Shown: positions 23,559 to 39,162 of the stretch, one piece after another | How the letters are laid out: every line of letters begins with the position of its first letter | How positions within the stretch are numbered: position 1 is the first letter of the stretch | Position numbers and translations under genes: made by a program | Assembly: GCA_964035545.1 (NCBI GenBank) | Contig: OZ037767.1 | Span: forward strand, 21,220,628-21,284,627 | From: Bugula neritina | Lineage: Eukaryota; Animalia; Bryozoa | Length of the DNA: 64,000 nucleotides | Direction: 5' to 3' | The notes under the pieces: generated by a model | What the model was told of the DNA's origin: nothing | Seen by the model: only the letters and a program-made list of their open reading frames with translations | Database searches by the model: none

Positions 23559-24959
23559 TTAGACATGGGCTGGTGTGGAAGTCGCCGGTGAAGCTCTTCG
23601 ATTGCCTTCATTTTCCGGGTAGCACATACCGCACCATTCATTGGCCATTGAGTAGATGATGTCATCCATTGTCATGCAGAAAGTGGAGAGGAAGTAGCAG
23701 CCTGGCATCACCCATGCCAGGTAGTAGCCGATGCCAAATGAGTGATCAGGAAGAACTTTGGAGTTCTGAATGATTACCGTGTAGACTATCATGGCCGCCA
23801 GTGAGCACAAACCTACAGAGAGAACACAACTCTACAGCTCCAGTACAACTACAACTTAATAAACCCTTACAAGTTACAATAACTAGTAATATAAAAGACA
23901 GAGCTATTTCAACCACTTACCACATATGAAGAAGATTTCCCCAGCCGAATGGTAGTAGTAGACCTTCTTAGACAGACTGAGTGAAAACACCCCCAAACTT
24001 GTCATGATTGTAGCCGCCACCCCAGCCAGTAGACTGAACATAAGCAAACCAATGATAGCACTTTGCCAGCCTACAAAACAAACCACATGTTTGAGATACA
24101 GGAGACAGTGGGCAGTCGGTAAATGACAAATTCAGTGTGAGACATACAAATGCGTGCTATGAGTAGTTCTATCTGTAAACAGTTTATTCAACGTGAACTG
24201 GGTACGATGAAATATTGCAATGGCATCAACAGTTTGAGGTGAATGAATAAAAGCCTGATTCTTTAGTGGAGATACGTAAGAGCCCAGCAGTGATTGGGTG
24301 GAGAAATGTAGGAGCCCAGCAGTGATTGGTGGAGATGAGTGATAATGAAGAAAAGCTGATAGTTGCGGGTACTTAAATTACGTTGAACGTTTAGTAAGTG
24401 AAACTGGCAGAGACTCTTCAGGTCTTCTTTTGAACTAATGGCCCCTTCCAAGAACTTGTGATGGCATATTTGCCAGATTCCGATTGATATGCCTGTAACA
24501 AAAAGCAACAGGTCTGCAGTGATTCAGTACATAGCACGCTGTTGACAGCAACATTGCATTGATAGTTCCATAGTACTGAAACCTCAGTTTAATGGCACTG
24601 TAGCTTCAATGCTATGACCAAGAAATAAGTTCGCCAATCAAACTGGACTTTACTGTAAAGTGTTTTACAAAAATGGCAAGTTTATCGATATTTAAATAAT
24701 TTGTCACACACTGCTAGTCTTGGAAAGTGACCAGCACAAAGAGTGTTAGACTGAGTTTCCTCTACATACCTGTCTCCCGAGTGGATAGCCAGTGCGAGTT
24801 TGTTAATGCGTAGAAAGTAAATGCTACAGCGATGAAGGAGCTCAGGTACCCAACATATCTGTACGGCTTGTAGCAATGCACCTCTTTGTGCTGCTGGGCT
24901 TCGGTCAACATTGGATGGGTGTCCATGACAGGCCCTCTTAGTTTGAAGCATCCAGTCAT
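23559..24959 (-). CDS. Claudin/PMP22/EMP-superfamily tetraspan protein, short isoform (~234 aa)
   Basis: Exons 24959(ATG)-24770, 24492-24382, 24070-23921, 23812-23559, with all introns phase 1. TM1 is followed by SHW...GIWQIC...C (W-GLW-C-C signature), then TM2 WQSAIIGLLMFSLLAG and TM4 preceded by SFGIGYYLAW. Confidence 0.85.
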
Positions 24960-36900: not shown

Positions 36901-39162
36901 TAATTATTATAAATACAATATGTACAGGTATACCAATAATATGCTAATGTAAATGCAGTATGTACAGGTATATATACCAATAACATACTAGCTAATGAGT
37001 GGTTCATTACTTGTTTCAATTCATCTTCAATTCACCTTCACACTTTCTGAAGGTTTTTACACATCTATGTCAATTTAAGCAGACTTCTAGCAGTACAATC
37101 ATCATTAATAGCATAATATCTACATACTTTTACAATTTTCTGCAAACCTTCTATATTTTTTTAAAATATTTTACAAACAATAATCCCGAAGACTGTACAG
37201 ATCGAATGTTTAGGTCTACTTATAGTAAATTTAGCTATATCATGCACGCTGTGCTAATGAAAAGTAGGAACTGGAAGAGCTGTCTGATAATGAGTAGGCA
37301 GCAGGGCTTCAGGCTGTGTCGCAATCAATACATCTTGTTCATTAGGTCTGACTTTCCTTCAGTGCAGTGCAAAGTCATGAAGTAATGCATTTTATATTCA
37401 CTGTATTTAATTAATGTTTTGCAAGGCTTTGACAAGAATGTTATAGAAAATAATAATGAGAAAGGAAGAAAGTCAGGTCGGTCTATAAATAGCTTTACAA
37501 GAGACAGTGGCTGCAGCTAGTGTTGACCAAATTCACACATACATTTCTAACAAAACTGGAAATGTAAAATCTATTTGCTAAAACCTGGTTAATAAACATG
37601 AAAAGAGTATAAAGTTGCAAGCAAAAACAAAAATGATCCATTCAATGTGACTTATAATTTTTACTGTAGACTTGTGTTTTATATTCTTGTATCATGACGC
37701 AGTCACCAACCTGATTATAATGGAGACAGACTACCTGTTGAGTTGACATAATCTGATTGAGTTAAAATTAGTAAATGAAGCAGTCTAGGAAGATTTTTTA
37801 TAGAGAAAGTAGACGCAACATTATAGAAAATAGAAGTATTTGTAGTAAATTGGTAGTAGACGTGCAAGTACAGATTTTAGAAAGTAATTGTAATAAGTTG
37901 TTCTCACCTCAGTTTGGCAGGAGATGGTGCTGACATAATGCTATCAGTTCTGCCATTACATAACGCTGACTATACTGGTTTAACTGAGAATGCTGACTAA
38001 GCTGTTTAACTGAGAGGTGCAGATGCTGTGTAGACCACTTCTACTCACCAACTGAATGTTTGTTTGAGAAGATGCAACAAGGAAAGGTAAGCTGACAGTT
38101 GAAGGGTCACACCAACTACGCTATCTTACGGCCAATCATTACTTACTGACATTACCATTATTAGTCAATGTGTTGGTAATCAGAAATATTGGCAATGCAC
38201 ACTGGGAATGTGTGAAGTAGCTATAGCAGCATTACCTGCATGTCAGCAGTATTACCTGCATCTCAAGTGAAATCAACTAAATTAAAACACTTGACTTATG
38301 GAAATGCTATAGCTGTGTGTGTAGCTTATTTCAACTATATAACAAATGTTGTTCTATTACTACATGATGAGTGTGATACGAGAATCTCATTAAAATGTCA
38401 CATCAACTTAAGGTCTTCCAGTTTACAGAAATGAGCTACTATTTCTTTAGAGAATTTTTTACAAACTGGTTATTGTTTATTCTATAATGAAAAGCCTCAA
38501 GTCTTAAATAATCTGAAGTAAAAAGTTTTGGAAGGTCAAGATATGCCTCGTAAAACATAACTATAGGATTCTGCTTTCAGAACAACTGGTGATGTGCTAA
38601 ACCTAGTAATTACTCTTGGAGCAATCAGAAATTTTGGGGTTAAGAGAAACTTTTTAAACCAGCGTTTTCTAGCTGAGCAGTTTAACGGTCATTTATTTAT
38701 GCAAAAACCCACATCTTGAAAAATTCCTATCTAATCTTCTTAACTATGTGCTAGATTTCCCAGAAAGAAAACTTGTGCAATAAAAGCATCACAATGCACC
38801 TGTGCTATTCGGTTATTGCGACTGTTGGTTCATCAGTTTTCACTGAGTATCTAAATTCGGACAAATTGTAGGTATTATAGAGTTTGTTGAGGGAACATCT
38901 GTGGTCTCGTGGTTAGATCACCATGACTCAGTAGTTTGATCTCTAGTAAAGGCTACCGGCGATGTTAGGAAGGGTATCTAGTTATAATAGAACAGTCTTC
39001 AGCCTTCTTCAAAACCTTTCTATCAGAGGCTCTTATAGGAATAGTGGCTATAAACCTGCAGTTTTAGAGTCTAGGACTTTGTTAAGCAAATGCTCAACAA
39101 AAACTTAAGATGAGCGATAGATGTAGAATTACCTGACTGTTTGAGTTACTCTGAATCTTCAT
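23559..39162 (-). CDS. Claudin/PMP22-superfamily protein, long isoform (~574 aa) with its own N-terminus, TM1 and ECL1 spliced to the shared TM2-TM4 exons
   Basis: Exons 39162(ATG)-39133, 36055-35923, 35542-35334, 33694-33644, 32942-32861, 32765-32655, 31250-31104, 30130-29978, 28588-28388, 27642-27559, 26969-26850, then shared 24070-23921 and 23812-23559. Total 1725 nt, no stops, all GT-AG. Contains TM1 (LGFIIALFVMIYAIPPICSTRW) and HGFWYNC...C. The 5'-most and 51-nt exons are least certain. Confidence 0.72.
27766..28183. mobile_element. ~420-bp insertion interrupting an AT-rich minisatellite; possible solo LTR
   Basis: Higher-complexity block starting TGTAAT and ending TAACA, with the same tattatattgtattctaata array on both sides. 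TATAAA and AATAAA on the minus strand. No clean TSD. Confidence 0.35.
29365..29965. repeat. ~29-bp minisatellite (ttaccagagagtatatattactccaccta), intronic
   Basis: Tandem array ending next to the donor at 29977; includes a short inverted patch at ~29465-29525. Confidence 0.9.
30880..31090. repeat. ~21-25-bp minisatellite (tactacatgctatttatag) next to the donor at 31103
   Basis: Directly visible tandem units. Confidence 0.85.
31360..32005. repeat. Composite GTGTGTA / actgtagtgtgtat satellite
   Basis: Nested 7/14/21-bp periodicity; explains ORF 31700-32098. Confidence 0.92.
33712..33900. repeat. 12/16-bp tandem repeat (caggtgacagtcagag) upstream of the 51-nt exon acceptor
   Basis: Directly visible. 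Confidence 0.8.
34916..35026. repeat. (CAGA)n microsatellite
   Basis: About 27 perfect units. Confidence 0.97.
35145..35277. repeat. 22-bp minisatellite (atatactgtgtgtgacatatag)
   Basis: About 6 units. Confidence 0.85.
35578..35780 (-). repeat. Interspersed repeat, copy A (unclassified)
   Basis: Reverse complement aligns with 50160-50340 (tttaggtgcagcagtggagaaattgagatag...gagaacataacttc...tagaacacagg...ttactgca). Confidence 0.75.
38890..39060 (+). mobile_element. Degenerate SINE, copy 4
   Basis: gtggtctcgtggttaga...aaaggctaccggcgatgttaggaag...aaaacctttctatcagag..tcttataggaatagtggctataaac matches the SINE family. Confidence 0.6.

Follow-up and report, generated by a model that had tools for sequence, protein, structure and literature searches.

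In vertebrates, CLDN10 makes its 10a and 10b forms from alternative first exons, and the exchange of the first transmembrane helix (TM1) together with the first extracellular loop (ECL1) provides a single claudin gene with two outer faces, giving CLDN10a/b their ion selectivity and CLDN18.1/18.2 their tissue identity. Alternative first exons of the same kind have been documented for CLDN18 (PMC9153115). Here, we describe a locus of related design in the bryozoan Bugula neritina. It lies in a 64-kb stretch of contig OZ037767.1 (assembly GCA_964035545.1), which is called the window below; coordinates are positions in the window, and all exons of the locus are on its minus strand. The locus very probably represents one gene of the PF00822 superfamily in which either of two 5′ modules, each excluding the other, is joined to a common 3′ half. 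Two cassettes, A and B, each predicted to encode TM1 and ECL1, would feed a single constant region encoding TM2-TM4 and so give rise to two proteins. This reading is supported by the presence of only one constant exon pair, by purifying selection, by orthologous proteins that join either B or A to the constant region, by a nested exon order, and by Mytilus mRNAs.

As in CLDN18 and CLDN10, alternative 5′ exons (encoding the N terminus, TM1, and ECL1) and shared TM2-TM4 exons are combined within a single gene. The logic is already known from these two genes; here, it is deeply conserved across Lophotrochozoa in another superfamily branch. The bryozoan locus differs from CLDN10 and CLDN18 in that each cassette consists of two to three or more exons instead of one, and in that one cassette carries a several-hundred-residue cytoplasmic N terminus with conserved motifs of its own. 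In addition, the protein is not a claudin proper, and the design, always with the same phase-1 junctions, is shared by four or more lophotrochozoan phyla. An earlier note on this stretch had proposed that the design evolved within this locus, which is not so given its distribution over these phyla; independence from vertebrate CLDN10/18 is plausible. Our literature search on this family, or on such a design in lophotrochozoans, found nothing relevant.

The earlier note had placed seven exons on the minus strand with their motifs and phase-1 donors. We found all of these correct to the base, with 7/7 exons open in the frame and at the exact coordinates given:

28388–28588, minus strand: B1, first exon of cassette B, with the juxtamembrane W..L..YWDH..F motif, TM1, and Trp; phase 1 at both ends; matched by all long-form homologs (E 1e-4 to 2e-7).
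27559–27642, minus strand: B2, second exon of cassette B, an additional part of ECL1 with many N-glycosylation sequons; phase 1 at both ends.
26850–26969, minus strand: B3, third exon of cassette B, the part of ECL1 with G-F-W-Y-N-C...C; phase 1 at both ends; matched by the Haliotis long form.
24770–24959, minus strand: A1, first exon of cassette A, with ATG, a short cytoplasmic N terminus, TM1, and Trp; phase-1 donor; protein identical in KAF6033326.1; aligns with the N termini of mollusc short forms.
24382–24492, minus strand: A2, second exon of cassette A, ECL1 with G-I-W-Q-I-C...C; phase 1 at both ends; found in the same relative place in Haliotis and Tubulanus.
23921–24070, minus strand: C1, constant exon, with TM2 (W-Q-S-A-I-I-G-L-L), a loop, and the start of TM3; phase-1 acceptor; aligns with the constant part of all homologs, long or short.
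23559–23812, minus strand: C2, constant exon, with the rest of TM3, the second extracellular loop (ECL2), TM4, the cytoplasmic tail to its Val, and the stop; open frame, AG acceptor.

Among A1, A2, B1-B3, and C1, every internal exon has an AG acceptor, and every exon has a GT donor. The 3′ ends of A1, A2, B1, B2, and B3 are all in phase 1, that is, after the first codon base; C1 starts in phase 1 and supplies the two remaining bases of the split codon. Joined together, A1, A2, C1, and C2 give 705 nt with an open reading frame (ORF) of 234 amino acids (aa) from ATG to stop, which we refer to as model A and which has the length predicted earlier. The splice from B3 to C1 also keeps the reading frame, and the chain U2b-U2-U1-B1-B2-B3-C1-C2 forms a single open frame of 405 aa. 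It includes three exons upstream of cassette B, all with good splice sites:

29978–30130, minus strand: U1, long-form upstream exon with the P-A-P-I-R-K-A-R-K-E-S-V-K-F-V-N motif; phase 1 at both ends; 60% identity to the motif in a transcript-derived long form (P0007) and in other long forms.
31104–31250, minus strand: U2, long-form upstream exon with the W-L-E-W-S... motif region; phase 1 at both ends; weak collinear matches.
32655–32765, minus strand: U2b, long-form upstream exon; phase 1 at both ends; AG acceptor with a strong polypyrimidine tract, GTAAGT donor.

In each cassette, a hydrophobic TM1 is followed by Trp and then by a G-phi-W-x-x-C...C loop, which reads G-I-W-Q-I-C...C in A2 and G-F-W-Y-N-C...C in B3. 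No further motif of this kind occurs on the minus strand between 23.5 and 36 kb. The B loop spans ~80 aa and contains seven N-x-S/T sequons; the A loop spans ~45 aa and contains none. The two ECL1s differ, as the expectation of different outer faces implied, but the difference is not one of the outer face alone: the cytoplasmic side differs greatly too, owing to the long N terminus of the long form. The shared tail ends in -A-H-V. Its terminal Val is kept in most family members, while the preceding residue varies across the family (Q, H, N, or T), and the conserved Val could be a PDZ ligand.

The claim of a single TM2-TM4 exon pair was upheld in the window, where tblastn with model A found no second TM2-TM4 copy, and in the genome, where a six-frame search of the whole 216 Mb showed the C2-like exon to be single-copy. 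The B1-like exon is single-copy in the genome by the same search. Neither a third cassette nor a second constant region was found in the window and genome searches.

A search of 1.8 billion cluster representatives with C2 retrieved a 234-aa protein from B. neritina (KAF6033326.1, P0001) with 92% identity. Its length and exon content are exactly those of model A, and among the 232 exon-encoded residues compared, 9 differ between the two. The contig that encodes it (L003) is ~87% identical to window positions 20978–35278, introns included, and the window is thus clearly diverged from the L003 assembly. All splice sites are conserved between the window and this B. neritina contig, and B2 is identical over 84/84 nt with its splice sites kept. 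The counts of synonymous to nonsynonymous differences were 10:1 in B1-B3 (B1 6:1, B3 4:0), 13:3 in A1-A2 (A1 5:0, A2 8:3), 12:6 in C1-C2 (C1 5:0, C2 7:6), and 21:2 in the U exons (U1 8:0, U2 4:1, U2b 9:1). With a nonsynonymous share of ~72% assumed for unconstrained change, the share observed is far lower in every exon group, and the synonymous excess is strong for each cassette on its own (binomial P ~2e-5). These counts support purifying selection on both cassettes. The same comparison brought out one conserved segment outside the exons:

25100–25780, no strand assigned: conserved 680-nt non-coding block just upstream of A1; each 100 nt is 93–99% identical to B. neritina (background, 87%).

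Within this block, we found no minus-strand open frame longer than 49 aa and no Rfam family. It is a candidate for the internal promoter or the 5′ untranslated region (UTR) of the short form.

Sequences from related species, a source of corroboration suggested in the earlier note, carry the same arrangement. Protein searches recovered long-form homologs of 366–657 aa, whose C-terminal ~130 residues match C1/C2. In these proteins, TM1 is preceded by a W..L..F-W-E-H..F motif and, before that, by a long low-complexity N terminus. They come from molluscs, brachiopods, nemerteans, annelids, and flatworms, including Lingula, Haliotis, Gigantopelta, Candidula, scallop, oyster, and clam species, Lineus, Tubulanus, Owenia, and Macrostomum. 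Nine homologs were compared with the window by tblastn, namely, eight long forms (Lingula, Haliotis, Tubulanus, Candidula, Macrostomum, plus transcript contigs) and one short form (P0020). The long forms gave collinear minus-strand matches at ~31.2 kb, at 30.13–29.96 kb, and at B1, B3, and C1/C2. The match at 30.13–29.96 kb corresponds to a P-x-P-[IV]-[RK]-K-A-R-K-E motif with 60% identity; B1 was matched with E values down to 2e-7, and B3 by Haliotis only (E 2). Judged by these matches, cassette B provides TM1 and ECL1 for a conserved long isoform and is not a separate gene. Many molluscs have short-form homologs, which begin M-K-N-F-L-K-F-K-T... and align with A1; these were often found as spliced transcript contigs. 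The constant parts are nearly identical when the long form from a scallop, oyster, or venerid clam is compared with the short form from a closely related species.

The genomic loci of the long-form genes were inspected in Haliotis asinina, Lingula anatina, and Tubulanus polymorphus. All three contain an intact A-type ATG exon nested inside the long gene, downstream of the B-type TM1 and loop exons and upstream of a single C1/C2 pair. Haliotis and Tubulanus also have A2-type exons, Lingula has an exon in the A2 position, and all junctions in the three loci are in phase 1. The split codon predicted from the DNA corresponds to the residue found in the protein, for example, D at the B join and H at the A join in gastropods and mussels.

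Both forms were recovered as uninterrupted ORFs in Mytilus, in Logan contigs from one Sequence Read Archive accession series; three runs contain the 538-aa long form, and seven contain the 217-aa short form. A contig of the long form (L010) and one of the short form (L012) are 100% identical over 602 nt, beginning at the second base of the split codon and continuing past the constant region into the 3′ UTR; before this point, no similarity between the two could be detected. Other Mytilus contig pairs are ~98% identical over ~1.18 kb from the same starting point. Together, these data show that Mytilus makes both mRNAs and that they share their downstream exons. A further contig, L007 from JGI, was rejected as a transcript, as it is unspliced genomic DNA.

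KAF6033326.1 was used as a stand-in for model A in the family scan and in folding. It scores 51.9 bits on PF00822 (PMP22_Claudin), for which the gathering cut-off is 26.7 bits, and the long-form homologs score 37–58 bits. When the window exons were scanned singly against Pfam, C2 alone was weakly positive (15.9 bits, profile positions 112–156), and the PF00822 profile missed the locus in the six-frame genome; we attribute the blanks of both scans to the exons being too short. The AlphaFold 2 model of KAF6033326.1 has four long helices with a mean predicted local distance difference test (pLDDT) score of 81.8, and its best Foldseek matches, all with a probability of 1.00, were claudin-15, claudin-19, TARP gamma-2/8, and MP20. 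At a strict threshold, a simple hydropathy scan detected only TM2 and TM3 in the short form, and TM1 as well in the long form. By profile score and modeled fold, the protein classes as a tetraspan of the PMP22/EMP/MP20/claudin superfamily (PF00822).

Its place within the superfamily was approached by comparing the family profile with the PDB. MP20 was the best match (5.8e-10), followed by claudin-19 (8.2e-8), claudin-15 (4.5e-7), and then the TARPs; single-sequence matches to claudins were marginal (E 0.006). The ECL1 motif of the superfamily, W-(x>8)-G-L-W-x-x-C-(x8-10)-C (PMC3879130), is present in both cassettes in a relaxed form, with a Cys-Cys spacing greater than 8–10. The C-terminal -Y-V PDZ-binding motif of claudins proper is absent. 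The protein is claudin-like in fold and motif without being a claudin proper, because MP20 leads the profile-to-PDB ranking over claudin-19 and claudin-15. The claudin-like identity given to the locus earlier can therefore be kept at the level of the superfamily and the fold, but not extended to the claudins themselves.

The protein resembles lens MP20/LIM2 (PDB 9cbv) in having four helices, short beta elements in the loops, and a W...G-L-W-x-x-C...C motif, and MP20 has the highest target-normalized TM-score among the matches listed (TMt 0.76, root mean square deviation 3.7). Their identity, however, is only ~16%. We know of no alternative TM1/ECL1 cassettes and no long N terminus in MP20, PMP22, or the EMPs. 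The TARP/CACNG gamma subunits have the same fold, as reflected in many Foldseek matches, and a similar ECL1 motif; nevertheless, their profile matches are weak (E 2e-4 to 1e-2), and the sequence match is weaker than that to MP20 or claudins. TARPs end in a C-terminal Val, as does the family described here. TMEM47/VAB-9 are adherens-junction tetraspans that form a distinct clade of the same superfamily (PMC3879130). They are similar to the bryozoan protein in size and topology, and one mollusc short-form ortholog is named 'transmembrane protein 47-like' by NCBI. In contrast, the UniRef name of the Mytilus coruscus ortholog is 'CACNG5', and the support for a place in the TMEM47/VAB-9 clade is that one database name. 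Indeed, the names of orthologs in the databases disagree among 'TMEM47-like', 'CACNG5', and 'MARVEL domain-containing'. A junctional or adhesive role may be expected for the protein.

We propose that two transcription starts choose the 5′ module and that each choice is followed by splicing to the common phase-1 acceptor at 24070. The start of the long isoform would lie 11 kb or more upstream of C1/C2, at 35.5 kb or farther out and possibly near 39.2 kb. Several phase-1 exons would encode its disordered cytoplasmic N terminus, and B1-B2-B3 would then provide TM1 and an ECL1 of ~80 aa with the seven N-glycosylation sequons. The long pre-mRNA would skip A1 and A2 and join C1 at 24070. The short isoform would start at an internal promoter immediately 5′ of A1 that probably lies within the 25.1–25.8 kb block. 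A1-A2 would give it a separate ATG (24959), a separate TM1, and a ~45-aa ECL1, and would be joined to the same C1 acceptor. Because every junction is in phase 1, the cassette would supply the first base of the codon preceding the TM2 Trp. Both products would keep TM2-TM4, ECL2, and the tail with its Val, and would differ in TM1, the whole of ECL1, and the cytoplasmic N terminus. From the sequence, we infer that this bryozoan uses both junctions and two promoters.

On a wider scale, the dual-cassette gene is probably ancient and older than the divergence of bryozoans, molluscs, brachiopods, and nemerteans. It would produce a minimal short form and a long form with a heavily glycosylated first outer loop of twice the length and a cytoplasmic N terminus of several hundred residues with conserved basic motifs. 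Its phases would have been frozen for more than 500 million years, and it would represent a protostome counterpart of CLDN10/18 that arose independently and is misannotated in most genomes inspected. The first outer loop looks like a recurrent target of isoform diversification in four-pass junction and adhesion proteins. The two cassettes offer a specific handle on which tissues and contacts use which face in animals without vertebrate-type tight junctions.

Several observations weigh against a gene with two strictly exclusive modules. In this bryozoan, both isoforms are predicted from genomic sequence. No Bugula B-form protein was found in a collection of 15 billion proteins, where high-identity matches to the C2 query were limited to the 234-aa form. 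Enumeration produced no convincing exon chain from the ATG at 39162 to a product of 574 aa, and U2 has a 1-bp gap in the B. neritina contig. The 574-aa length came from the earlier note, which gave it without listing the upstream exons; of that B product, the in-frame join of B3 to C1 was recovered, within the 405-aa chain, but the full length from this ATG was not reproduced. The remaining points concern the exclusivity of A2, which is symmetric (phase 1-1) and leaves the frame open in a B3-A2-C1 join. In addition, the RefSeq long-form model of Lingula takes an exon in the A2 position (L005 79319–79417) and consequently has two motifs. Such features would be expected if the cassettes were not strictly exclusive and the long form, or a variant of it, also took A2 (B1-B2-B3-A2-C1-C2), with a two-motif ECL1. 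We consider this unlikely, since the transcript-derived long forms P0007, P0033, and Mytilus P0056, the last in three runs, contain a single motif. Moreover, the long-form models of Haliotis and Tubulanus skip their A2-type exons, and the Lingula model may be a prediction artifact.

A different explanation starts from an open frame of 70–74 aa at 26513–26301. If the B exons ended in a terminal exon of their own at ~26.5–26.3 kb, with C1/C2 used by the A gene only, the locus would consist of two neighboring genes; in its favor, the B. neritina annotation calls only the 234-aa gene. The earlier note had named a private terminal exon at ~26500–26301 as a finding that would speak against a shared constant region. 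We rejected this frame as a terminal exon, given that it is conserved at the 88% background level and has no homology. Furthermore, if TM2-TM4 were missing, a B protein would retain just one helix of a fold that has four, other TM2-TM4 exons are absent from the window and the genome, and every long-form ortholog runs on into the constant region. Two separate genes are thus very improbable. Least credible of all is that a single form is real, with A1/A2 being fortuitous ORFs or the B exons a decaying relic. A2 is indeed the least constrained of these exons, and no transcript of either form was seen from this species; however, the strong synonymous excess in both cassettes, the conserved splice sites, and the orthologs of both forms expressed as spliced mRNAs in other species all argue for two functional cassettes. 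We therefore favor a single gene with two exclusive 5′ modules.

Further upstream, two elements bear on the 5′ end of the long form:

35334–35542, minus strand: U3, probable further upstream long-form exon with the D-F-D-A-L-F motif; open frame, AG acceptor, GTGAGT donor.
39133–39162, minus strand: apparent long-form start of the earlier note, with ATG, nine codons, and a GTAATT donor; a candidate by sequence, without homology or conservation support.

The [NDE]-[FY]-D-x-L-F motif of U3 is present in nearly all long-form homologs. We sought an in-phase link from U3 to U2b, and none could be made. The E-T-S-G-L-G motif, found at the N terminus of other long forms, is absent from the window. At ~31227, inside U2, a single base is deleted from an A-run in the B. 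neritina assembly, the exon being otherwise well conserved; this could be either an assembly error or the sign of a different acceptor site in that lineage. Just downstream of U3, at 34893–35095, lies a long short-period simple repeat whose translation gives repeated S-V-C-L or R-Q-T-D and which the B. neritina contig shares.

The expectation that automated annotation would split or fuse the locus is borne out across the genomes inspected. For B. neritina, the L003 annotation contains the short gene only, with the B exons uncalled, and several RefSeq molluscs have the long form only. The Gigantopelta model (P0053) fuses the B and A cassettes through a translated tandem repeat, and the Dreissena model (P0059) fuses the long N terminus to a complete short ORF. 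The Elysia models (P0071/P0052) look split into an N-terminal piece and a constant-region piece, the two being placed on contigs of equal length. The annotations of this gene are thus unreliable, and orthology tables and expression counts for the family are likely to be wrong.

Elsewhere in the window, two long open frames of 293 and 161 aa were found on the minus strand at 3789–5465, with no Pfam match at E<=0.01. They are probably exons of a neighboring gene, and the 161-aa frame contains a stretch resembling the end of a dual-specificity phosphatase domain. On the plus strand, a 110-aa ORF at 40859–41191 has no Pfam match; its tail resembles the C-terminal end of retrotransposon ORF2 proteins. 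AT-rich tandem repeats occupy 13507–15178, 18949–19488, 29251–29960, 31340–32100, 42429–42980, 56374–56989, and 61391–63586. These repeats, some of which lie in introns of the long form, give long spurious ORFs rich in Y, T, I, L, and H in several frames on both strands.

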